The notes below the pieces were generated by a model. That model had not been told where the DNA came from, ran no database searches, and saw nothing but the letters and a program-made list of their open reading frames with translations. A DNA stretch of 64,000 nt, from assembly GCA_001179505.1 (NCBI GenBank), contig CDMY01000358.1, positions 39,162 through 103,161 on the forward strand, read 5' to 3'. The stretch comes from Vitrella brassicaformis CCMP3155. Its lineage: Eukaryota > Protista > Chromerida. A program made the translations under genes and the position numbers. This document shows positions 1,135 to 24,482 of this stretch, in pieces; the stretch's first letter is position 1; each line of letters opens with the position of its first letter.

Positions 1135-2858
1135 TCAAATGCCCCCGGGGGGAAGTACTTTGAACACGGCCTTGGCCTGCATACACACACATACCGACAC
1201 ACCAGTTGTGTTACACACGGCTGGCTGCACGCCCACACCGTACGTACCCCATCCCATCCACCCCACCCACCCGTAGTGCGTCAAGCGGGACGAATCCGTA
1301 GTTGTGGCTGTCGATGCTCTCATTCATATTGTCTCCAAGCAGAAACACACAGCCATTGGGGACGACCTCAGGGCCAAAGCTATACATTGGTGGTGACGAC
1401 GACATCATCTTGTACCGCCCCCGCACATCCACACCGTTCACAAGCACCCCATCCGGCGAAATCGCAACGGTGTCGCCCTGTCCAAACAAACAGGCAGGCA
1501 GGCAGGACACAAACACACATTTCACGCATGTCTATCTGCGTCCATGCCTCTCCCCCCACGCAGGTGTGTGCATGAGAGCCCATGAGGGTCACCTCCTTAG
1601 CGATGATGCGTCTGAATGCGATGGCCCTGCCGCCCGCCAGCCGCCAGATCTCGTCGTCTCTGCTCGGGTCGCCAGTGGCAGCAATCTGACGCTTCACATA
1701 TTGCTGACACGGACACAAGAAACACAAAACAGATAGTTCATGTCTTTTGGCACTTGTTGGTTGTACACGCACGCACCTTTACGAAATCTGGTTGTGACAT
1801 CTCAACCACGTCCCCGACTTGGAAGGCGTCCCTGGAATAACCGCAACCAAAGTTTACCACCAAGCCTCTTGGTGTGATTGCTGGCTCTCTGCCTTACTGT
1901 TTGATGAGCTTGTTGACCACGACCAGGGACTGCGATTCAAGGACCGGCTGCATGCTCTGGGATGCGTTGATAACCGTGTCAAAAACAAAGAAGCGCAGCA
2001 GTAGGATGGGCAGGACGACTATGCCGATGGCCAGGGCGTCCCACTTGCCGCTCGTCAGCTCCTTCAGTGCCTTTGCCACACCAGTCGGCTCGCTCTGCAC
2101 ATACACACATACAGAAGAGACAGGCAGGCAGGCAGGCAGGCCGCCACTCAGACGGACTACATATGTCTGCAGTGCATGTCAGGGAACCCTGGGTGGGTAC
2201 CTACCTGTTGTTGCATCCTGCGCGCCTCCTCTTCTTGCTTCCTTCTCCTGACGAACTCGGCGATCATGCTGTCGCTGGGAGCCGAAGACAGGTCGTCGTT
2301 GTCTAACCCGGGGATAACAACCACCTTGTCCCCATTCACACCACCCTGATAGACCCACCAGCACACGGCCACACGGCACGACACGATCAATCATCAGCTT
2401 GTGCAGTGTGTCGTGATGGCACCCATCCCACCCACCCACCCACCCACCTGTTTCTTGGCTTCCCGCGGTATCACCATCAGCTCTCCGCCAGGCTGCCGGG
2501 ATGCTCTGTCAGTGGGCTGAGCTGGCGCCTGGGCTCGCTCCTCAAGGCCCTCAATCACCCGCAAGCCCAGCTCTTTCATCTGGTCACGTGCCGCAGTGTT
2601 GTCATCGAACCGCCCACTCTGGATCTGCTGAATGAGACTCTCGCTCCTGACCTCGTCACCCTCATCCTTCGGAGCCGATGCCTTGCCATCCGCCTGCATG
2701 TGCAGAGATCTGTGAAGCCTTCGCCGCCTGACATGCAGCGGCTGCCAATGGTGATGCCACAATGATGGAGCAGGGCCGACAAATGCTGACGAGATGAGGG
2801 CGGCGTGCACTGCAATCCCCATGGTGAACAAAGAAGAGATCAGGACGCTTCGCTGCAT
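1135..2858 (-). CDS. Type I signal peptidase (S26), plastid/thylakoidal processing peptidase-like, multi-exon, with bipartite leader
   Basis: Spliced protein has a hydrophobic leader ending SSA-FVG, an R/H-rich transit region, a TM segment (WDALAIGIVVLPILLLRFFVF), box B ASQSMQPVL, box C GDVVEMSQP, box D-like FRRIIAKEGDTV and box E GDNMNESIDSHNYGFVP. The C-terminal exon crosses a C/G homopolymer, so the stop at 1135 is less certain. Confidence 0.85.
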
Positions 2859-2947
2859 TCTTGTAAGCTAAGCTCGCAGAACGTTCCGTGAAACCGCTCG
2901 TCCCTCGAAAGCTCGCACCTCAAGATCTGCCGTCGTTTGGAAGAACG

Positions 2948-3959
2948 ATGAAGTTCTCGACGACTGTGAGCTCAGACCGGCGAAAATCGCGTAAGGCTCA
3001 CTTCCAGGCCTCCTCGTCGGAGCGCCGGAAGATCATGTCGGCGCCGCTCAGCAAGGACCTCCGCACCAAATACAACGTACGTACACACAAGACACACAAG
3101 GGGGGAGGGGTGGCAGGCGTCGTGTCACTGACGGGAGAGATCTGTCCTCGCCTATATCGGTATGTACTGGCACTTGTGTTGTGTGGGTGCAGGTGCGGAG
3201 TCTGCCCATCCGTAAGGATGACGAGGTCATGATAGTGCGAGGCCACTGCCACGACCGTGAGGGCAAGGTCACCCAGGTGTACCGCAAGAAGTGGGTCATC
3301 CACGTCGAGCGAGTCACACGCGACAAGGCCAACGGTACAGACAGACAGACACCCAAACAGCCCATCCCCCCCCCCCCCCCCCNNNNNNNNNNNNNNNNNN
3401 NNNNNNNNNNNNNNNNNNNNNNNNNNNNNNNNNNNNNNNNNNNNNNNNNNNNNNNNNNNNNNNNNNNNNNNNNNNNNNNNNNNNNNNNNNNNNNNNNNNN
3501 NNNNNNNNNNNNNNNNNNNNNNNNNNNNNNNNNNNNNNNNNNNNNNNNNNNNNNNNNNNNNNNNNNNNNNNNNNNNNNNNNNNNNNNNNNNNNNNNNNNN
3601 NNNNNNNNNNNNNNNNNNNNNNNNNNNNNNNNNNNNNNNNNNNNNNNNNNNNNNNNNNNNNNNNNNNNNNNNNNNNNNNNNNCCCCCCCCCCCCCCCCCC
3701 CCCCCCACACACACACACGCGGCGTCGGTTCGGTTGGCTCACTGGGTGTCCTGTCTGTCTGTCTGTCTGTCTGTCTGTGTCGGCACGTGTGCGTGACCGA
3801 CCAGGTTCGAGTGTGCCGATCGGTATTCACCCTTCAAAGGTGGTCATCACGAAGCTGAAGCTGGACAAGGACCGCAAGGCGCTGCTGGACCGCAAGAACC
3901 GGGAGACCAGGAAGGGCGGCAAATACGACAGGGACGTGCACATGTCCAGAGTCGATTGA
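2948..3959 (+). CDS. RPL26: 60S ribosomal protein L26 (uL24); exons 2948-3076, 3193-3334, 3805-3959
   Basis: [43 protein letters not shown] / [17 protein letters not shown]...[24 protein letters not shown] / [30 protein letters not shown], joined by GT-AG introns. Confidence 0.97.
3383..3681. other. Assembly gap (299 N) flanked by poly-C runs, inside RPL26 intron 2
   Basis: Run of N bases seen directly. Confidence 0.99.
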
Positions 3960-4570
3960 GGAGACAGACAAGACACACAGGGTGGCACAACGGTGCTTGC
4001 CTGGTTCTGTGTCGTGCGTTCTGCTCGTGGGCCGGGCCGCAGCCTTTGTGGCTGGCTGTCTGCTGATGGATGGGAGTGAGTGATGCGCTGAATGACTGGA
4101 TGCGTGTAAGACATGGATGCGCCTTGTGTGTTGACTGACGATGGACAGACAAATTTCCCCCTTTAACAGCTAGCATGCCATACATGTCAGTCACGACCCG
4201 CCCAGAGAGTGAGATAGTGAGGGAGGGCTGCTCGACCAGGCTGCTCCACAGGTAAGCCTACCGCTCCTGTCTATCCTATCCATCCATGTCAAAAGATAGA
4301 TGATTCATCCATGTACAAATCGGATCGGATGCAGTCAACCATGAGTTCGCCCATCAGCCACGTCCATCCGAATGCATGCCCTTATCTACACATCCACGAA
4401 TTCCATCCAAGTGTCTGCCTGCCTGCCTGCCTGTCTGCACACCCCTCATCTAGCCCCTCGCCAACCCCCGTCAGTCAGCCAGCCAGCCAGCCAGCCAGCG
4501 GCAGTATGTATGGCTACTATCTATCTACGAGTCCAGATCAGATTGCCACCCGCTGCCTGTCCCTCCCCCG

Positions 4571-5174
4571 TCACCCGTCAATGTGCATGTCGTCCCCCTC
4601 CTCCTCTTTGATCTCCACCTTGGGCTGCTTGGCGGACCGGTCCTCCTCCTCTAGGGGCTCGCTCTTCACATCCTGATTATTGATGGATGCCAACCAACAC
4701 CACACAACGAACGACCCGTGTGGACAGGCGTGTCTCTCTTGTAGACGTGCTCAGAGAGATACATACATACATATGCATACTCTTTTGACGCCCTGCTGCA
4801 GCACGGGTCTGGCAGCCGTCAGGCTCTCAGGCGGCAGCTGCAGTGCACCACACGACACACACCAATCCATGCATGAGAAGTGGGTGGGTGGGTGTGCCTC
4901 CCTCCTCCCTCCTGTAGCCAGGTGTCTGCATGTAAGTTGTGTGGGGCGTCCGTACGTATTTGTGGACGTCCTCTATCATGTGTGTGGCCTCAGCCTTGAA
5001 GTCGATGGGGTCTGCGTTCTGTATGTAGCCCTTGGGACGCACTTCGCCTTGGTACAACTCGGGCTTGCAACGAAGAACCACCGTGTACTCCTGATGGATG
5101 GATGGATTGATATATCGACACACAAACGAGTGACGGGACACGACATACCACGATTGAAGATGCGAGTGCGTGTC

Positions 5175-5207
<33 letters not shown>

Positions 5208-7964
5208 GTGTATACCTCATAGGTGGCAGTTCCGAGTGCGCCAATGTGTTTGTCTATGTCCTCTGTCCTGCCCTCCTCCTCCAGCTTCTTGTACGTACTA
5301 GCCTCCATGCACAACAACTTCTCACCTTAATCAATCAATAGACCGATGGATGGATGGACATACCGACACGCATACATACATACATACAAGACACCCCACC
5401 CGGGGGCAGTTTGATGTGTATGTAAGTCAGTATGGATGGCTGGCAGGCATGTGCCACCTACGTACGTACCGATTTCGTGTGTGATGGTGACGAGGCCGCT
5501 GTGGGTGGTGTCGTTGATGGACGCAGGGAAAATGAACCTGCACGTCACATACCATGCACGCCAAACAAGGGAGGGACGAGCTCTCTCTGGCGATTTGAAT
5601 GAATGTGTCAAAGAAGGTGAGGTACTGTCTTACTTGGGTTCGGGGAGGACGGCCTTGTCACATGTGATGCAGCGATAGGCGGAGTTCTCCTCAACGCACT
5701 TCTTGCGACACGCAGGGCACGCCTGAAGGAAGGCACGCACCAAACATACACCATAACACACACACACACAGGTGCATCCACCCGTCCCACACATGTGTGT
5801 CTCTCGTCGGTCTGTCTGTCTGTCTGTCTGCCCGTCCCTTAGGTCCGTCGTGCGTACCGTAGCGTACCATGTATGTGAGTGGTATCTGGTTGGACCCGCC
5901 CTCCTTCTTTTGCATCTCACGCCGGACCACAGCCAGACGGGCAAACGCGCGGTAATACGATAACTGCAGTAACCATGAAGGATGAATGGCGGGAGGGTGG
6001 GCGGGGGGGATGGATGGTTGTTAATGTGATGGAGCACACATGCAGAGGTCTGTCTGTCTGTCCTGCCTTGGTTCTCTCTCTCCAGGTGTAGGCAGGTACG
6101 TACCTGATCTACCTCCCAGGTGTCCTCCTCCTCCATTATCTGCCGCAGCGTCTGCAACCACACACACACACACAGCACAGCACAGTACCAGCTGTGTGTA
6201 CAGTGAGATGGTTAGCTTGCATGCTCACGGCGTCTTTGATTTCCCTTCGTCTGCCCGTCCCGCCCTCCCCGCCCCCCGGACCAACCATCATGCCCGCATA
6301 ACGGGCACTGCTACCGTGCTGAACACGCCATGACATGACACACACGCAGGGGGACAGGCACACACAGACAGACACCACACAATACATTACACACTAAAAG
6401 TTGGATTTGGCAGGCAGTCCCTAGTTGGCGTTGGTGGGCTGCCTGCCTGCCTGCCTGGCTGGCTGGCTGACTGACCTGTGTGTACCATTCCCTGAGTTGT
6501 TTGGCCTTTGGGTCATCGCAGCCCTCGTACACCACACGACTGCTGCGCGTCGAACTACCGGACAACATACCTGCACACACACACACACGTATCCACCCAG
6601 GTGATTCGCCGGGATGTCTTTGTGGGGGGGTCGGTCGATATGGGTGCATTGCATTGCATTGCATGTAAGTGTGTGGGTGGGTGTGTGTGTGTGTGGGTGT
6701 CCTTCCTTCGTGGTGTGTGTGACCTTGGTATTCCTTCATGAGTACGTCTTTGAAGGCCACGACAGGGTTGTTCTTGAGCTTCTCCTCCGACACCTCAGCC
6801 TACATGTAATCGTGGAAGCCAAGCCAACACACTTCCCATATATCCACACATGCACAGTGTACGTACGTATGTATATCCCTTCTCCTCCCCTCCCCAGGGT
6901 GGGTGTGCGGGTGTGTGTGTGTGTGTGTCGGGGGGCTGGAAGGGTTCCTCCCTCCCTCCCTCTAGGCCTACCTCTTTGCCGATCAGTGCGAGGTCGATTT
7001 GGTGTTCGCTGTCGTCGACGAGTGTGAGTGCACGTTTGGCGAGGGATATGGTCTTGTTATCGCGTGTGAATGTGATGGTCTCGGGCGGGCGGAAGGTCTT
7101 GACGACGGCTATCAGGTCCACGGGGAACGGACCGTTGTGCTTCTTGGCCTTGGCCCTGATCTCACGCAAATCCATAAACGAAAACCTGCACACAACACAC
7201 ACACCCATAAATGAGGACACACGGAGGCAAACATGCACGCGTATATGGGGAATGGGGGGGGATGCAAGGGTGCGGTGCGGGCGGCATCGTGCCCATCCAT
7301 ATGTGTGTGTGTGTGTGGCTCTAGGCCTAGAGGCAGGGTGGCTGGCTGGCTGACCGTGGTGCGGTAGAGATTCTCCTGTCATCGGTGCAGTGCTGGATGC
7401 TGGCGGCGCCGTCGAAGTGGATCTCATAGGCGTGCTGGGTCCTGTTGTAGCGCGAATTCGCTATCCGCACCGTGCCCTGGCTGAACGTGTACACCTGCAC
7501 CGCATCCAGCATTGAGAGAGAGAACCACCTTTGACACACGTAAGTACCCTCACCCCTTGCCACACCATCCCCCATCCATCCATCGACTCAGGTCTCCACC
7601 TCACCTCTCCCTCTACGATTTTGTCATGCCACTGCTCGGCAGCAGTGCCCCAGAACTGAGCCCTGATCTCGTCATCCTGCACACAACACATATAAGCACA
7701 CACCGCACCGTATGCATATATCGCCTCTCCGGCGTTCTCTCAATCTACAGACGTCATGGATCCATCCATCCATCCATCCATGCGTACATCTTTGTCGATG
7801 AGTGTGACGCTGAAGACGGCGCCTTCGCCGACGGCGGGGGGTTTGCGTTTGAATCGGTTGAGCTCCGACTTCTGCGTCACGCGGGCCTTGATGGTCCACC
7901 GGGCGAAGTGGGTGCTCAACTCACGCACGGGGAAGTACTCAGTCGGATCCGCATCACCCGACAT
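4571..7964 (-). CDS. RPA1: Replication protein A large subunit, short form (DBD-A/B/C with C4 zinc finger, no RPA70N domain)
   Basis: EYFPVRELSTHFARWTIKARVTQKSELNRF...AVFSVTLIDKD-DEIRAQFWGTAAEQWHDKIVEGE-VYTFSQGTVRIANSRYN...YEIHFD (DBD-A); VDLIAVVK...KRALTLVDDSEHQIDLAL (DBD-B); ACPACRKKC...YRCITCDK zinc finger (DBD-C). First ATG at 7964, stop at 4571. Confidence 0.9.
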
Positions 7965-17135: not shown

Positions 17136-18120
17136 CTAGTCGGATGTCTGTTCTTCTCTACCCCGCGCCTCACTATCGGAAATCCCTGTGCTGCCCCCTT
17201 TCTCCTGTCCACCCTCTCCTCCCTCGTCCCCGTCCTTTTCCCCCTTGTCTGGGTCCTGAGACCCTGCCGTAGCCGACCTTAGCGCCAAAGGCAGGGGACA
17301 CAGCAGCCACAACAGGAACAGCGCAGCCAAAGCTACTGCTTTGTTCGTCACCCCTCTCCGCCCTTGCCGCTTGTCCCGGCCTCTCAAGACGGCTATCCAC
17401 ACCGCAGCCAAGCCAGTCCACGCAGCGTGAATGACGGCAGAGGTCGCCGAGGACGTCAGCCGCACTGCCAGCGACGAGCAACTTACGGGGGAACGGGTGC
17501 TGCTCGAGGGGGACGGGGACGACGACGGGCAAGAACGGTTTAACGCACGGCCCTCGTACGTCTGATTGAATGAACCGACAGACCAACAACAACACACGCA
17601 CAGACGCAGGCAGGGACCACACACCAACACACGCACAGTGAGAGTACGGGTGGGTGCGGCGCACTAGCCCCCCCGTTCTTTCTGTCTGTATCCGTGTATG
17701 CATATGGTTGGTCCTACGTACGTACCTGGTCTGTGCAAGTCGAGTTGTCCCTGTCTGTCTGTCTGTCTGTCTGTGTGTGTGTATGTATGTGTGTGTGTGT
17801 ATGTATGTGGTTTGGGTGCGGCTGTGCGTCCCTTAGTTTGTACGTACCTGGACGAGAAAGGTGACGGTTCGGCTTTGGCCGATGGCCTGTCGGGCATTGA
17901 AGAGCCAGCTCTTTCTTGCGTTTGCTTCGGCGGGCTGTTCATGGGCGCTGGTGGTGGCCGTGCTGCTAGTAGCTTTGTCGCGATGTCGGGTGAAGAGGGC
18001 GAGTGTGTGTCCCCCCCTTTGCCGCGTGTCCCAGTACCCCTCTCTGCCCTCTCTTTGTCTCCATGACGGCAGCTCCTCGATGCTCAGCTCCTTGTGCTCG
18101 TCGATGGGCGGGAGGGCCAT
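17136..18120 (-). CDS. Hypothetical protein, possibly a small membrane protein
   Basis: [23 protein letters not shown]...TFLVQ ends at a GTACGT donor. The downstream exon (~17573-17136) in the same phase has two hydrophobic stretches ([38 protein letters not shown]). A possible 25-nt exon near 17725-17749 would change the frame. Confidence 0.4.
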
Positions 18121-18275
18121 ATGTATTGCCGGGGATAGATAGATAGAACCGTGGGTGGGATGGGCTGCCCGCTCGATGAGCTGTCCTCTCCTCTCCTTCC
18201 CCTCCTCGCTTCTTTACCACTCTCACTCACAACCAAAAACAAACAACACCATACACCCTCCCATTTCGTCCCGAA

Positions 18276-21200
18276 ATGCGCGCTCAAAGGCTCGCCAACC
18301 ACCGTGGCATGAAAAGATTGTGGGTTGTGTGTTGTTTGTGTGTGGGTGTTGAAGCACGAGAGTTGCTCAAGCTGAACAGGAAGGTGAGGGATCATCCGGT
18401 CCATCCACAGACAGATCACGACAGACATGGCATCTGTCAGCATGTCTGGTCGCATTCATCCAGACCGGCACGACACATGCGAATGAGCCTCTTTGCTCCA
18501 TCGAGTATCGGATCTGCATCTGATCTACCTTGTCGCCGCGTCTGCATGTCTTGTGTGTGCAGCTCACCAGCTTCGTTGTGTCTGGGCTGAGGACCTCTGG
18601 TGGGCCTCTGCGGATACGCCGCCACTTCAAAAGTAGACCAGGTATGCCAGCCAGCCAGTGCACATGACGAATCGACCGACCGTCGGACAGCGAGCACGAC
18701 ACTCCACTCGCTCACAGCGAGTGGCCCGCCACATGCACATGACATGACGTACTCGCGTGTGGGTGTGTGGTGTGTGGGTGTGTGGTGTGGTGTGCAGGTG
18801 CGAGTGTGTCAGGGCGACCCCCTGTCGCAGATATGTCGAGGAGCCTGCTCGACTACGGCTTCACTGCCCAATCGAAAGGTACATACATCCACAGCCACCC
18901 GTCCGAGTGTTTGGTTTCCCGACCACCAATTGCTGGTGTGTCGTGTGGTGTCGTGTGGTGCACCCATATGCACTCAGGTGGTGGCGCGTCGTCGTCGCAG
19001 CAAGCTGGCGACGCAGATGGACAAGACAAGGCGTCCAAGAAAGGTAAATCAAGAAGTGGTGCATACATACATGTAACACGACACCACCCCCTGCCGCTCA
19101 TGCAAGGCGTTCGTTACGTCAGGTGTGGCGAAGGGTAGCAGTGCAGCGGCGGCGGCAGCGGCGCCACCCAAAGGCAAGAAGCGCGCCAAGCCTCAAGGTC
19201 GAAAATGCTGGGAGGGAGGGAGGGAGGCAGGCAGGCAGGGAGGGAAACACATAACAAACACCCACTCGCCCAGTGCAGGAAGGACAGGCAGACTGCCTGT
19301 CTGTCTGTCTGTCTGTCTGTCTGTCACAAGTAGAGCGCTGGATGGATGCAACTGTCTGTCTGTGCAATGTGTTTGGTGTGTTGTTTGTGTTGATGCCCAT
19401 CCCATCCCATCCCTCAGTGTCTGAGGAGGATGAAGCCGACGTGACCCCCGAGCACAAGGGCAAGGACGACCAGGACATGGACCAGTCAGATGACATGCAG
19501 GTGGGGAGGGAGCCAAGTCGATACACACAGACATACTGAGCGGGGGAAGTTGTGCACCTCGCATGGCGGGACCTGATGGATGCCGTCCTCTTTATCCTCC
19601 CCATGTGTGTCCCGTGCGTGTGTATCAATCAGGATGAAGGCGAGGATGGTGACATGTTGGCTGGATCGGGTGGTGTGGCATGTGTGGTGGCATCCATTGT
19701 CTATCTGCATCCATCGATTGCATATGCGTGTTTGGTCAGATGAGGTCGAGGACGACTCGGAACGCGAGGGCGACAACGAAGGTGGGTGGCGGGGCAGGGC
19801 TGTGATGGATGGATGCATGGATAGATGGATGGAACAGCCGACTGTCGTGTGGGTGTGGGTGTGTGTGTGTGTGTGTGCAGAGGTTGAGGATGCGTCTGAG
19901 GAGGACAAGGAGGAGCAAGCAGCCAAACGCATCAAAGGTAGGCAGGCAGGCAGGCAAGGGAGGGGGAGACAGATATATATCTATCTGTCTTGTCTGTCTC
20001 CCATCCATCCATCCATCCATACATACATACAGAATCCATCCATCCATCCATCCATCCATATGTATGTATGTATGTATGTATACCCTTGTCTGTCCCCCAC
20101 CGCACGTGCGGTGTGTGCGTCCCTTGATTGCTTATTAGTGTCAGGAGATTCGAAGCAGGGCAAGGCGGTGCTGAAGAAGGCCAAGGCTTCGGCCAAGAAG
20201 AAGGGCACCAAGAAGGCAGCGGGTGGCAGCGGGGCGCAGTCAGTCTTCGCCATCAACGTCACCAAGACACTCGACAAGGACCAGGACGCTGCTGACGCAA
20301 AGGACATCCAATCTCCCAAATTCGACCCCTCGCACTTCAATGTCGACGACTACAAGCACAAAAAGGACGGAAAGGGACTCAAGTAAGGAAACCCACCCAC
20401 TGGCCAGCGGGGAAGGAAGAGGTGGAAGGAAGTGGAGAGAGGTGGCAGTGAGCGACGGACGCACAGATGGACAGGCAGACAGACACACGCACAGACAGAG
20501 AGACAGAGAGACAGAGAGACAGCACCTCGACGGCGAGTAGAATGGGAAGGAGAAGAGGCCACAAGAGAAGGGCTCTCGGTCACCTTGGGTTTGGCCACGT
20601 TGTATAAATCAATGTGTGTAGGTATTGTCTGATAGCCGAAGCCTTCGACAAGATTGACGCGCTGAAAGGCAGCGGTTCGTCATCCAAGAAGATGTCAAAC
20701 GCCATACTCACAAACCTATTCAGGTGAATGTCATCAAACAAATCAAATCGGGTCGGAACCCTTCGATCGACATAAATGTAGAGTAGACAGCCAGAAATAT
20801 AGGGAGGGAGGGAGGGAGGGAGGGCTCACAAGCTCCGCCTCTGCCAGCACGAAGCATTGAGTGTATGACTCAAATCGGCCGTGTGGTTCTTCTTTGTATG
20901 TGATTGTCAGGATCTTCATAGTGCACTGCCCCGGAGAGCTCAACGATGCTGTGTACCTCTGCATGAACAAGTACACACCACCCACTGAATGAATGCACCA
21001 TCCACCCACCGCTTGTATCCGCCTGAGCCCGCCAATTGTCTCTCTGTGTGTGCCATCCATCCATCTACTCACCCCAATGATTGAATCAAGAGTTGCCCCG
21101 GACTACGAGGTACGCACGTGCATTGCATGCGTCCTGCCGAGCTGCCACCCTCCCTCCCGTATGGCTGCCACATCTGTGTGTCAATATATTGTGTGTATCA

Positions 21201-24200
21201 GGGGATCGAGCTGGGTGTTGGTGACTCACTCATCATCAAGGCTATATCGGAAATGAGCGGGCGGACAGAAGCACACATCAAGAAAGGTATGCCACCACTC
21301 GACACGCGCTCTATCCATTGATTGACACACGAGAGCTCTTGTGTGGGCCCAAACGTCTGGGCATCCCTTTCTGCCTGCCTGCCTGCCTGTGCCGTGTGTC
21401 CAGACGCAGAAGCGCTAGCTGATTTGGGTCAGCTGGCAGTCACGTCCCGCCAGACGCAGCGCATGCTCTTTCAGCCCGAACCCCTCGCCGTCCGCAAAGT
21501 GCTCGAGAGCTTCCGGGCCATCGCCAAAATCAGCGGAAACGATGCCCAAAAGCGAAAGAAGGACAAGGTAGGTAGGGCAGCTGAGCTGGGTGGGTGGGCC
21601 TCCTGAAGCCACATACACGTGGTTGTCACACATGTGTGTTTGCGTCTGTGTGTACATGTGGGTGTCAGGTCAAAGGTTTGCTGGTAGCTTCGAAGGGCAG
21701 CGAAGCCAAGTATATCGTCCGCCACCTTCAAGGCAGGCTCCGGATTGGCGTTCAAGCCGCATCCATCTTCTCGGTATGTCTGACATCAACCAAACCCACA
21801 CGACACAACACAACACAGTCACTCACAACGCAGTGGGTGCGTATGTCGTCTGTCTGTTACTTATGCGCACATCCATCTATCCGTCCGTCCGTCCGTCCAT
21901 GTGTGTATTGCAGTGTCTCGGCCAGGCCTTCGCCCTGACATGCCCAGCTGTGTCAGACGAGGACGCTGTGGGCGATGTCCGACGCAAGAGCCGCACGGAC
22001 ACCAAGGTGAGAGAGACGTTGTGTCTGTCTGCGTGTAGCGCGGCCATTCATTCCGTGGTCGATGTCTGTGTCTATCGCCCACAGGAGCTGAACCAGCGGC
22101 TGACGGCCTATGACGATGCGGTCCGAGCAGCAGCGTGCGAGTGCCCAAACATAGACATCATCGTCGATCACCTGATCCAAGGTATGTACGTACGTACGTA
22201 CGTACGCAGGCGTTGACAAATTCTCAACACACACTCTGTGCGTGGATCTACCGGGCTGCACAACAGGGACGGACGCGAGCGAGCTGCCCGACAAGTGCCA
22301 AGTCCAGCCAGGCCTCCCCGTCAAACCAATGCTGGCCAAACCCACGAAAGGTGCAAGCGCACTTGTGCCACTGGCCTCCGGTAACTCACACTCGATAGGT
22401 AACGATTGCTCCTGCCTGTCTCAGGCATATCTGAGGTGCTGGATCGTTTCTCGGAGTGCAATTTCACGTGCGAATACAAGTACGACGGAGAGCGGCTGCA
22501 GGTGCATGTGGTTGACAGAGGAAATGACCTACCGGATATCAGGTGCAAGTGACAGCTTTCGTTGACAAAGGCGCCGGCGGAAAGGCTTCTTTCTTTCGAC
22601 AGGTTCTTCTCTCGGAGCTCGGAGGACCTCACCACCAAGTACCCGGATGTAAGCACTCGTGCTGCCGTGAAGCCCCATCAACCCTCTATGCACATTCCAC
22701 CTCCTGCGTGCAGGTCGAGTCCGCTGTTCGCGAACTGCTGAAAGAGGTACGGATGGGTACGGATGGTGCGAGAGGTCGCATACAGCGGCAGTCTCGCAGT
22801 CTCTCATCTGTGGCTGCATCCCGCAGGAGACGAAGTGTTGCATACTGGACTGCGAGGTGACATGTCGGACACATGCGAAAGGCTGGAATGAGGGACGGCG
22901 ACACGAGAGTTTGCATGCCCCGTGTGTATAAGGTTACCGCGTTTGATGTCGAATCGAAGACCATCCTGCCATTTCAGCATCTCGCCACCCGCAAGCGCAA
23001 GGATGTGAATGAAGAGGTGAGGTCAGGGTGTGAATCAGGACGTAGATGGCTGTCTCCTCATCTCCCATCTACCCCCCACAGAACATCACAGTCAAGACCA
23101 AGATTCACCCATTTGACTGTATCTACTACAACGGGCAATCTCTGGTCCGGCATCAATTCAAAGAAAGGTGAGGACACAAGAGGGGTGGTGCTCAGCCTTG
23201 CGGTGGCTGCGTGTCGTGCAGGCGCGAGTGCATGTGGAAGTGTCTCACTGAAGACCCTAACAGAGCGGAATACGCAAAGTAAACAAGGGCCTTGAACACC
23301 GAGGCCCACTCGGTAGTGATGTGCATGTGTCCACTTTTGGGTGTGCATCCTGTCATCAGGTTCAAAGACCTTGATTCAATGGAGGATGTTCAAGCCTTCC
23401 TCGACGAAGCAGTCCGAAGTGAGCCGCGTCTCTGCACTCTCTTCCTTCGTGCCCGGACGGCGTGGCCTCTATGAATTGTGTCTTCGCCTGTACTCCCAGA
23501 CCACTGTGAAGGATTGATGGTGAAGTCACTGGATGATCATGCGACATATGAGCCCTCAAAGCGATCCCTCAATTGGCTGAAGATCAAAAAAGACTACATA
23601 GAGGTGGGTTGAACGATACTTCACGTTACCACATGGTGGTTCTCTCTCCATCGGCCTTTTCCCTGATCCAGGGGATGACGGACTCGATCGACGTTATCCC
23701 TATTGGGGCCTTCCACGGGAAAGGCAAACGACAGGTACGTTATTCATCGGGCCATCCCGACCTTCTGGGTATCCCCTGCCATCTTTCTCGCAGGGAGTGT
23801 TTGGAGCCTACCTTCTCGGTAACCCGCAGACTGCCGATGTCGAACAGCATCAATGTGTCTCTATGTGTGTGGTTCAGCCGTGTACGATGCACAAGGCGAT
23901 CAATACGAGACCATATGCAAAGCAGGGACTGGCTTCTCTGACGAGGCCCTCGAGAAGCATTCGCAAACGCTGAAAGAGCACATCGTCGACCAGAAACCCA
24001 CATACTACAAGGTCAGCCAATCAATAGACGCATCTGTGCATTATGTGCCTTGTCCAAATTGGATTCAGGTGACGGACAAGCAGCCGTGCGACGTGTGGTT
24101 CAAACCTGTGGAGGTAACCGCACCCGACGACTACAATGCAAATGTAGCATGCGACAGTTGAATGCGGCAGGTATGGGAGATCAAAGGAGCCGATATGACC

Positions 24201-24482
24201 CTCTCGACGGCCCACACAGCTGCCTCGGAACTGAGAAGCGACTCAAAGGTGAATGAACGAGCAAACATCTCGTCCAGTTCATACCGCCTATGACAGGGGA
24301 TTGGGCTCCGGTTTCCTCGCTTTCTCCGAATCCGAGACGACAAGAATCCGGATGACGCAACAACTTCCGAACAGGTGAGGCAGAAGCTTCTGCACCATTA
24401 CGGACAACCAATTCTTCCGCTTCTTCCGTTAAAGATCCTCGAACTTTACGACGCCCAGTTCACCAAGAAGAAGAAAGAGTGA
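18276..24482 (+). CDS. LIG1: DNA ligase I (ATP-dependent, LIG1/CDC9), many exons; internal Met at 18833 (probable nuclear start) plus an upstream in-frame leader
   Basis: [44 protein letters not shown], adenylation motif [80 protein letters not shown]; stop TGA at 24480-24482. Confidence 0.96.

Follow-up and report, generated by a model that had tools for sequence, protein, structure and literature searches.

A signal-plus-transit-like leader in frame with DNA ligase I of Vitrella brassicaformis, and a plausible plastid isoform from a single gene

Every plastid genome needs an enzyme that seals nicks in its DNA. For complex plastids, to our knowledge, all that is known of this ligase comes from indirect studies in Plasmodium. 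Vitrella brassicaformis is a photosynthetic alga related to malaria parasites, and the DNA ligase I (LIG1) gene of strain CCMP3155 raises the question of whether one gene could supply both the nucleus and the plastid. The gene is located on contig C358, within the 64,000-nt stretch of DNA that was analyzed (the window). The original prediction, made from the letters of the window, held that LIG1 carries a spliced leader upstream of its nuclear start and may be dually targeted. We favor, with a probability of roughly 0.55, the reading that this one gene gives two protein forms that differ at the N-terminus only and that the long form is plastid-bound.

The LIG1 coding sequence, from the first ATG to the stop codon, spans 18276..24482 on the forward strand, where all LIG1 features given below also lie. 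Its exon chain was built from RNA joints and the public protein CEM05464.1: the joints resolved at least 24 small exons as far as 23016, and the 3' part beyond this position was taken from the protein. Sequence and transcript contigs place two in-frame ATGs, a signal-peptide-like segment running to V-E-A, and the beginning of a basic segment in exon 1 (18276..18383). Exon 2 (18563..18641) encodes an R/K/S-rich, acid-poor, transit-like segment. Exon 3 (18798..18878) encodes the end of the leader, then a third ATG and a PIP-like N-terminus, as judged by comparison with other alveolate N-termini. Intron 1 (18384..18562) is 179 nt long and in phase 0, and intron 2 (18642..18797) is 156 nt long and in phase 1. 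All leader introns are GT–AG, and the 3' end of intron 2 is a GT-only tract (18757-18794).

The joint of exons 1 and 2 (18383/18563) was observed directly in spliced contigs of four runs (X1, X2, X7, and X8). The joint of exons 2 and 3 (18641/18798) was not directly among the joints displayed, where a neighboring repeat was skipped, and was placed by GT–AG inference and an exact fit to the length arithmetic of the X7 contig. The JGI transcript contig L016 contained the exact strings of both junctions and also of 18878/18978. These contigs confirmed that the three exons are joined as predicted, that the leader is in frame with LIG1, and that its exons are part of the mature mRNA. The predicted splice structure was right and only its end needed correction: exon 3 ends at 18878, and the two further nucleotides up to 18880 are the GT of the next intron. 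The predicted 74-residue translation was identical on re-reading, and the same leader is present in CEM05464.1 (A0A0G4F180, 915 aa). The public gene model and MMETSP transcript ORFs gave the same 915-aa protein. The Vitrella model including the leader is already public, so the gene model itself is not new.

The 915-aa protein contains the three-domain core DNA_ligase_A_N, DNA_ligase_A_M, and DNA_ligase_A_C, with Pfam matches to PF04675 (1e-41 range), PF01068 (1.4e-59), and PF04679 (1.2e-23) that were all above the cut-off. The adenylation motif K-x-D-G-x-R, with the catalytic lysine, is present as E-Y-K-Y-D-G-E-R in the exon at 22425..22542. Exon 5 (19123..19197) encodes P-K-G-K-K-R-A-K-P, a basic motif that reads by eye like a nuclear localization signal. 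Upstream, a neighbor gene is arranged head-to-head with LIG1; its first coding exon is at 17848..18122 on the reverse strand with the ATG at 18122, as indicated by sequence and a transcript contig. Its 232-aa product had no Pfam match, and its transcript contig extends to 18266 in run X1.

Three in-frame ATGs are present in the 5' region of LIG1: ATG1 at 18276, ATG2 at 18309..18311 (Met12), and ATG3 at 18833 (Met75). After the upstream stop at 18177, the spliced 5' region has no other ATG in any frame. Only frame 0 is open, and frames 1 and 2 contain stops. From ATG2, 63 in-frame codons stay open across two introns. The contigs were colinear from 17900 to 18381 in runs X2, X7, and X8, and from 18306 in X1. 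The shortest assembled 5' ends (run X1 and contigs L017 and L018), which include contigs of an independent sample, were at 18306, 3 nt upstream of ATG2. Thus, the assembled transcripts do not start downstream of 18309, which would have left the signal-like start out of the message; ATG2 is part of the mRNA and was found in every transcript contig. ATG1 falls in a 39-nt stretch that one sample left without contigs; the leader isoform therefore most likely starts at ATG2, with ATG1 a less certain start. AUG2 and AUG3 occur together on spliced contigs, separated by the presequence, which contains no stop and no further AUG. Position -3 is G for each of the three AUGs, so that none stands out as a weak start. 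The AUG-free stretch between AUG2 and AUG3 was considered as evidence of leaky scanning and was dropped: in a codon permutation that kept the amino-acid composition, it was not significant (P = 0.29).

The leader ahead of Met75 was then described by crude measures. ATG2 opens M-K-R, followed by an 11-residue hydrophobic core with a Kyte–Doolittle mean of 2.78 and by V-E-A at -3 to -1, the V-x-A pattern of a signal peptide. The 47 residues after V-E-A contain 11 K/R, 2 D/E, and 8 S/T, the net positive, Ser/Thr-rich, and acid-poor composition of a transit peptide. Among random stop-free 47-codon windows from the same 64 kb, this composition ranked in the top 1.4-3.4%, and the combination of the three counts was found in 1.4%. 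The residue at +1 after the predicted cleavage is Arg, where a transit peptide would have Phe, another aromatic residue, or Leu. Phe at +1 is not strictly kept in Vitrella plastid leaders (PMC6668581), so Arg is not disqualifying.

The basic segment also allows an address for the mitochondrion, or for both organelles, instead of the plastid alone, with the 47 residues serving as the kind of presequence found in yeast CDC9 and Arabidopsis LIG1. The excess of K/R over D/E and the lack of Phe at +1 are consistent with this, and yeast and plant LIG1 use the upstream-AUG design in exactly this way (PMC12838351). The Plasmodium enzyme was likewise found on mitochondrial DNA, and its MitoProt score is 0.66 (PMC12838351). 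An in-frame GT..AG pair at 18304-18354 (51 nt) would even splice out the hydrophobic core and turn the leader into a purely basic presequence. However, this splice was found in no contig. All transcript contigs retained the GT-rich tract, so that its removal as an intron, or its being UTR, is ruled out for the assembled isoforms, with the limit that contigs drop rare variants. No AUG lies between Met12 and Met75 to start a form without the core. ER signal peptides typically have an uncharged core such as these 11 residues straight after M-K-R, and mitochondrial presequences do not. In our LIG1 sample, leaders of this kind were also confined to plastid-bearing lineages; Cryptosporidium and gregarines, which have retained mitochondria or mitosomes, had none. 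We regard a mitochondrial or shared address as rather unlikely.

The signal-like core and V-E-A would suffice for ER entry, and the core could be a plain secretory signal or signal anchor that leads a ligase form to the ER, the nuclear envelope, or the outside of the cell. The secretory pathway offers no known substrate for a DNA ligase, the long basic and hydroxylated stretch behind the core is typical of transit peptides, and the orthologues point to organelles (PMC6155542, PMC12838351). A purely secretory role is therefore very improbable.

The hydrophobic core is encoded by a G/T-only tract of 34 nt (18318..18351). Such a tract codes for G, V, W, C, L, and F whatever the frame, so hydrophobicity alone comes cheaply. 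Three similar G/T tracts in the LIG1 gene are plain 3' ends of introns. At 0.59, the GC3 of the leader was nearer to that of introns (0.55) than to that of the CDS (0.71), and the synonymous-codon score per codon was -0.16 for the leader, +0.20 for coding sequence, and -0.30 for introns. Frame 0 of the leader scored no better than the other frames. With a small training set drawn from the LIG1 gene itself, these codon-usage tests gave no support for the leader having been under coding constraint for long, and it is thus of recent origin, under weak constraint, or seldom translated.

These values agree with an extension that has no targeting function, in which exons 1 and 2 are effectively a 5' leader that is open by chance, the core is a by-product of the GT tract, and Met75 is the start of nearly all functional protein. 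LIG1 introns often contain G/T-only tracts, ATG1 may be untranscribed, a 3-nt leader would make AUG2 inefficient, and the gene callers behind the JGI ORFs picked Met75 as the beginning of both of their ORFs. Several observations argue against it. AUG2 is in every contig and is followed by the open codons, with the other frames closed. By the scanning rule, some ribosomes must make the long form, and an ER signal without use would do harm on an enzyme of nuclear replication. Few random open windows are as basic in composition. The Plasmodium and Toxoplasma orthologues are extended likewise, and Plasmodium is backed by proximity proteomics (PMC6155542). A leader without function thus seems improbable, about as much so as the mitochondrial address.

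The second Met at 18833 was predicted to resemble a PIP-type nuclear start. Met75 indeed aligned with the start of other alveolate LIG1 proteins at the PIP-type motif: Lankesteria LIG1 begins M-K-E-K-S-L-L-S-F-F, and T. gondii LIG1 has an internal Met216 followed by Q-T-S-I-L-S-F-L, a canonical PIP box. In Vitrella, Met75 is followed by S-R-S-L-L-D-Y-G-F. Compared with the PIP box Q-x-x-[ILM]-x-x-[FY]-[FY], it has no Gln, and a Gly splits the aromatic pair. The N-terminus from Met75 resembles a degenerate PIP-like motif followed by a putative nuclear localization signal.

LIG1 proteins were compared by the presence of a hydrophobic segment with a Kyte–Doolittle value of ≥2.0 within the first 45 residues. 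Among 153 full-length proteins, 16 had such a segment: 12 from Plasmodium/Hepatocystis, those of T. gondii and Hammondia, and two Vitrella isoforms. No such segment was present in the dinoflagellate, Perkinsus, Cryptosporidium, gregarine, animal, fungal, or plant proteins of this set. In the sampled LIG1, leaders of this kind are restricted to plastid-bearing apicomplexans and Vitrella. Among related lineages, similar extensions were found in Plasmodium/Hepatocystis and Toxoplasma/Hammondia; a Chromera LIG1 was not among the best 120 matches to the 915-aa Vitrella protein. A protein search with the exon at 21406-21567 returned only distant LIG1 matches (≤57% identity) and no chromerid. In a quick maximum-likelihood tree, Vitrella LIG1 was sister to all apicomplexan LIG1 (SH-aLRT 89) and apart from the dinoflagellate/Perkinsus clade, indicating that it is orthologous to apicomplexan LIG1.

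From the sequence, a plastid isoform of the single LIG1 gene is plausible, and we infer how it would be made and delivered. Translation from AUG2, or from AUG1 in any longer transcripts, would give a precursor with an ER signal peptide (M-K-R n-region, hydrophobic core, and V-E-A) and a basic, hydroxyl-rich transit peptide of ~47 residues. This bipartite signal would route the long form via the ER to the plastid with its four membranes, in which the ligase may close nicks during the replication and repair of plastid DNA. Translation from AUG3 would give the ordinary nuclear enzyme with its PIP-like N-terminus and nuclear localization signal. The choice between the forms may lie in the very short 5' leader: in the shortest contigs, AUG2 lies ~3 nt from the 5' end, and leaky scanning would carry some ribosomes past it to AUG3, the next AUG in any frame. 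Transcription start sites scattered around AUG2 could contribute as well.

Other ligases of Vitrella were also considered. A bacterial-type NAD-dependent ligase (LigA) was a candidate for an alternative plastid enzyme and was not detected in the genome: PF01653 had no match and TIGR00575 matched BRCT parts only, in a six-frame, exon-by-exon search that can miss a split gene. A second LIG1-like gene is present on contig C1040; it has a perfect PIP box, and a DRMBL domain lies upstream. Two further ligase matches in the genome, at the loci C283 and C518, are weak. Other ligases could therefore serve an organelle.

The plastid-bound reading also bears on history. The orthologous gene in a free-living photosynthetic sister lineage has the same design as in the parasites, with the ancestral nuclear start kept right behind the leader. 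Because free-living Vitrella shares this design, the comparison suggests that the sharing of one LIG1 by nucleus and plastid is old in the lineage and did not result from the genome reduction of parasites. A fuller scenario, which we offer tentatively and consider possible but doubtful, is that LIG1 was recruited as plastid ligase before parasitism, in the ancestor that chromerids share with apicomplexans, by a signal-plus-transit extension upstream of the ancestral Met–PIP start. Plasmodium and Toxoplasma would have kept the extension, and Cryptosporidium and gregarines would have dropped it with plastid loss. In Vitrella, the forms would be balanced by the ~3-nt 5' leader that forces leaky scanning to Met75, and the signal core may have come from an intron-type G/T tract. 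With its 74-residue extension, its three ATGs, and so short a 5' leader, the gene is a simple test case for two start codons splitting one enzyme between compartments. The practical gain is modest, as the gene model is public and the concept has been published for malaria parasites.

The closest known system is LIG1 of P. falciparum (PfLigI, PF3D7_1304100). The predicted leader structure holds in Vitrella, but the dual-targeting idea is not new: an apicoplast-type leader of PfLigI has been described since 2007, as reported in PMC12838351, and the Vitrella leader extends that idea. PfLig1 was found on apicoplast as well as mitochondrial DNA by ChIP-PCR, and PfLigI is regarded as the ligase for nucleus, apicoplast, and mitochondrion (PMC12838351). 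PF3D7_1304100 was also enriched in apicoplast BioID and has the PlastNN class 'Apicoplast' (PMC6155542 supplements). As in its Vitrella orthologue, a hydrophobic signal-like segment and a basic segment precede the ligase core. The differences are that the PfLigI leader is K/N-rich and not alignable with that of Vitrella, and that PfLigI is reported to have no recognizable PIP motif, whereas Vitrella has Met and a PIP-like motif directly behind the leader. PfLigI is the sole ligase of its genome, whereas Vitrella has at least one additional LIG1-like gene. The organellar association of PfLigI comes from experiments, whereas Vitrella LIG1 is known here from sequence and transcripts.

The LIG1 models of T. 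gondii and Hammondia hammondi share the layout of a hydrophobic N-terminus, an S/R/P-rich stretch, an internal Met with a PIP box, a basic/acidic linker, and the ligase core. The T. gondii extension is 215 residues long with several hydrophobic stretches, compared with 74 residues in Vitrella. Neospora and Besnoitia models begin at the internal Met, so the T. gondii-type extension may depend on annotation. No localization data for TgLIG1 were found in the literature searched.

Chromerid plastid proteins, including those of Vitrella, carry a signal peptide with a transit peptide immediately behind it (Fussy et al. 2019, PMC6668581). The Vitrella LIG1 leader resembles these bipartite signals by crude measures, with Arg at +1. 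A DNA ligase entry was not found in the supplements of PMC6668581 or PMC6156079. Predictions for chromerids include single-gene enzymes that are targeted to multiple compartments (PMC6723311). One mRNA of yeast CDC9 or Arabidopsis LIG1 provides a mitochondrial presequence from the upstream AUG and a nuclear form with a PCNA-binding N-terminus from the downstream AUG, and direct evidence for chloroplast targeting of Arabidopsis LIG1 is absent (PMC12838351). Vitrella LIG1 likewise has in-frame upstream and downstream AUGs on one mRNA with a presequence between them. The difference is that the presequences of CDC9 and Arabidopsis LIG1 are mitochondrial and have no signal peptide, whereas the Vitrella extension opens with a putative ER-type signal, as a complex plastid requires.

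The window covers 39162-103161 of contig C358. Its DNA ligase I gene (LIG1; plus strand, 18276 to a stop at about 24482) is split into many small exons. RNA joints and a solver for GT-AG introns and open frames gave the exon chain, and 24 exons were fixed as far as 23016, with micro-exons of 16 and 19 nt. The encoded protein is identical to CEM05464.1 (UniRef A0A0G4F180, "DNA ligase 1, Vitrella brassicaformis CCMP3155"). It contains the three LIG1 core domains, the K-Y-D-G-E-R adenylation motif, and a basic motif of the K-K-R-A-K type in exon 5. The N-terminal linker is alternatively processed at 19649-19739 and 19633-19672. The intron after the 16-nt micro-exon was retained in RNA run X1, in JGI transcript contigs L017 and L018, and in ORFs P0249, P0251 and P0252, where it closed the upstream frame. 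A second isoform of 923 aa (P0250) uses a later donor and gains 8 residues. G/T-only tracts of 25-38 nt lie at or near intron 3' ends; those at 18757-18794 and 19847-19877 abut the acceptor, and that at 19368-19392 ends about 25 nt upstream of it. The window has nine such tracts on the plus strand and one on the minus strand, and they may substitute for the polypyrimidine tract in Vitrella.

The original prediction was that a spliced leader of 74 residues, in frame with an internal start at Met75, gives a plastid-targeted isoform. The three leader exons (18276-18383, 18563-18641 and 18798-18878) translated exactly into the predicted string. Spliced contigs from four runs, which belong to three studies, contained junction 18383/18563; these runs covered about 30% of the stretch's words, equal to its exonic share. 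Junction 18641/18798 fitted the contig arithmetic exactly. It was also found as an exact 60-mer in JGI transcript contig L016, as were 18383/18563 and 18878/18978. Frame 0 was the only open frame of the spliced 5' region. Downstream of an in-frame stop at 18177, ATGs occur only at 18276 (ATG1, Met1), 18309 (ATG2, Met12) and 18833 (ATG3, Met75), all in frame. A GT-rich tract of 34 nt (18318-18351), which might have been an intron, was kept in every contig. The leader is real, expressed, and already part of the public gene model.

A minus-strand gene (17848-18266) lies head to head with LIG1. It encodes a protein of 232 aa that has no Pfam match; its ATG is at 18122, 154 nt from that of LIG1. 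Contigs of three runs and L016 span both genes. Being chimeric products of transcripts that overlap or abut, they are uninformative on the start. Downstream of 24482, an SNRNP200/Brr2-type helicase gene lies tail to tail with LIG1. Transcript contigs of about 10 kb span the helicase gene, LIG1 and the 232-aa gene, indicating that adjacent transcripts overlap or abut. In run X1, the neighbour's contig ended at 18266 and the LIG1 contig began at 18306. L017 and L018, which come from another sample and contain LIG1 alone, started at exactly 18306, 3 nt before ATG2; contig ends are not cap sites, which limits 18306 as an estimate of the start. The prediction would have failed with transcripts beginning downstream of 18309, and the separate LIG1 contigs began upstream of it, so ATG2 was in the mRNA wherever examined. 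ATG1 is within a 39-nt stretch without a contig in one sample, and its use may be restricted to a minority of longer transcripts. MMETSP ORFs starting at Met1 may originate from contigs of the chimeric type.

Counted from Met12, the leader opens with M-K-R, followed by an uncharged core of 11 residues (mean Kyte-Doolittle value 2.78) and V-E-A; judged from its residues, this is the textbook shape of a signal peptide. The next 47 residues include 11 K/R, 2 D/E and 8 S/T. Position +1 behind the predicted cleavage site is occupied by Arg rather than Phe; Vitrella is reported not to conserve this Phe strictly (PMC6668581). The sequence after Met75 is S-R-S-L-L-D-Y-G-F. PIP-type motifs open other alveolate LIG1 proteins at this position: the N-termini are M-K-E-K-S-L-L-S-F-F in Lankesteria and ..S-I-E-A-A-F-F in dinoflagellates, and the T. 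gondii motif is Q-T-S-I-L-S-F-L. With these starts and the exon 5 motif, Met75 appears to be the ancestral nuclear start, preceded by 74 (or 63) residues that look added on. Leaky scanning would be consistent with the lack of ATGs from ATG2 to ATG3, but this lack was not significant by codon permutation. Our best reading, to which we give a probability of roughly 0.55, is a plastid-directed LIG1 isoform from Met12 beside a nuclear isoform from Met75.

A functionless leader is an unlikely alternative that draws on nucleotide composition. The hydrophobic core is encoded by the G/T-only tract, and a sequence of this kind can specify no residues other than G, V, W, C, L and F, whichever the frame. 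The gene's three other G/T-only tracts lie at or near intron 3' ends. GC3 of the leader (0.59) is close to that of the introns (0.55) and far from that of the rest of the CDS (0.71). By synonymous-codon score, the leader is near the intron distribution, and frame 0 was no better than other frames. On the other side, among random stop-free 47-codon windows from the same 64 kb, 3.4% had as high a net charge as the segment after V-E-A, and 1.4% matched its charge, acid and S/T features combined.

Six-frame searches of the 72.7-Mb, 1064-contig assembly found no NAD-dependent LigA and no plastid ligase of bacterial type. They revealed a second LIG1-like gene (G000:C1040:15900-21500; locus L011, about 1900-7450). 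Its ORFs carry DNA_ligase_A_N and DNA_ligase_A_M, and Q-A-S-I-M-S-F-F in its linker is a perfect PIP box. Just upstream on the same strand are MBL-like ORFs and, at C1040:17414-17566, a DRMBL (SNM1-type) match, a layout reminiscent of plant LIG6. This ligase may share or have taken over the PCNA-tethered nuclear role. Weak ATP-dependent ligase domain matches at G000:C283:59051-59374 (minus) and G000:C518:741-893 (plus), one of them with an in-frame TGA, are candidates for LIG4 or other ligases. With the second gene and these matches, LIG1 is not the sole ligase in Vitrella, whereas it is the only one in Plasmodium.

We compared 153 full-length LIG1 proteins, a set without the Chromera orthologue. 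An N-terminal hydrophobic segment, defined as 11 residues among the first 45 that average 2.0 or more on the Kyte-Doolittle scale, was present in 16: 12 from Plasmodium/Hepatocystis, T. gondii GT1, Hammondia, and the two Vitrella isoforms. Within this set, it was absent from dinoflagellate, Perkinsus, Cryptosporidium, gregarine, animal, fungal and plant proteins. T. gondii and Hammondia have a layout like that of Vitrella, in which about 215 residues, hydrophobic and S/R/P-rich, precede an internal Met with a canonical PIP box. Their models (P0214 and P0211, respectively) include the 215-residue extension, whereas those of Neospora and Besnoitia (P0223 and P0215) begin at the Met-PIP start, reflecting either inconsistent annotation or a true difference among close relatives. 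Another Plasmodium LIG1, P0206 (Logan contigs, 48 member sequences), has a different, shorter hydrophobic N-terminus that rejoins the common sequence immediately ahead of the basic linker; P. falciparum transcripts may have an alternative first exon or start that accounts for it. A quick maximum-likelihood tree, built from hand-picked rows of the retrieved set with most unnamed metagenomic ones omitted, placed Vitrella LIG1 as sister to all apicomplexan LIG1 (SH-aLRT 89), with dinoflagellates and Perkinsus separate from this group. The leaders could not be aligned among relatives, so a common descent of the extension is something that we infer.

A literature search found no paper on chromerid DNA ligase. 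According to PMC12838351, P. falciparum ligase I was credited with an apicoplast-type leader as early as 2007. As described in that paper, yeast CDC9 and Arabidopsis LIG1 give mitochondrial and nuclear forms via two in-frame AUGs, and Plasmodium Lig1 is mainly nuclear, with ChIP-PCR finding it on apicoplast and mitochondrial DNA. These cases are in line with a mitochondrial or dual-organelle address of the Vitrella leader, which we consider unlikely; the signal-peptide shape would fit the plastid better. In the PMC6155542 supplements (2018), the P. falciparum ligase (PF3D7_1304100) showed strong enrichment in apicoplast BioID, and the PlastNN predictor assigned it to the apicoplast. The two-form LIG1 design is already known, and Vitrella would add another case, in a free-living sister lineage of Apicomplexa, with what looks like the ancestral start still visible.
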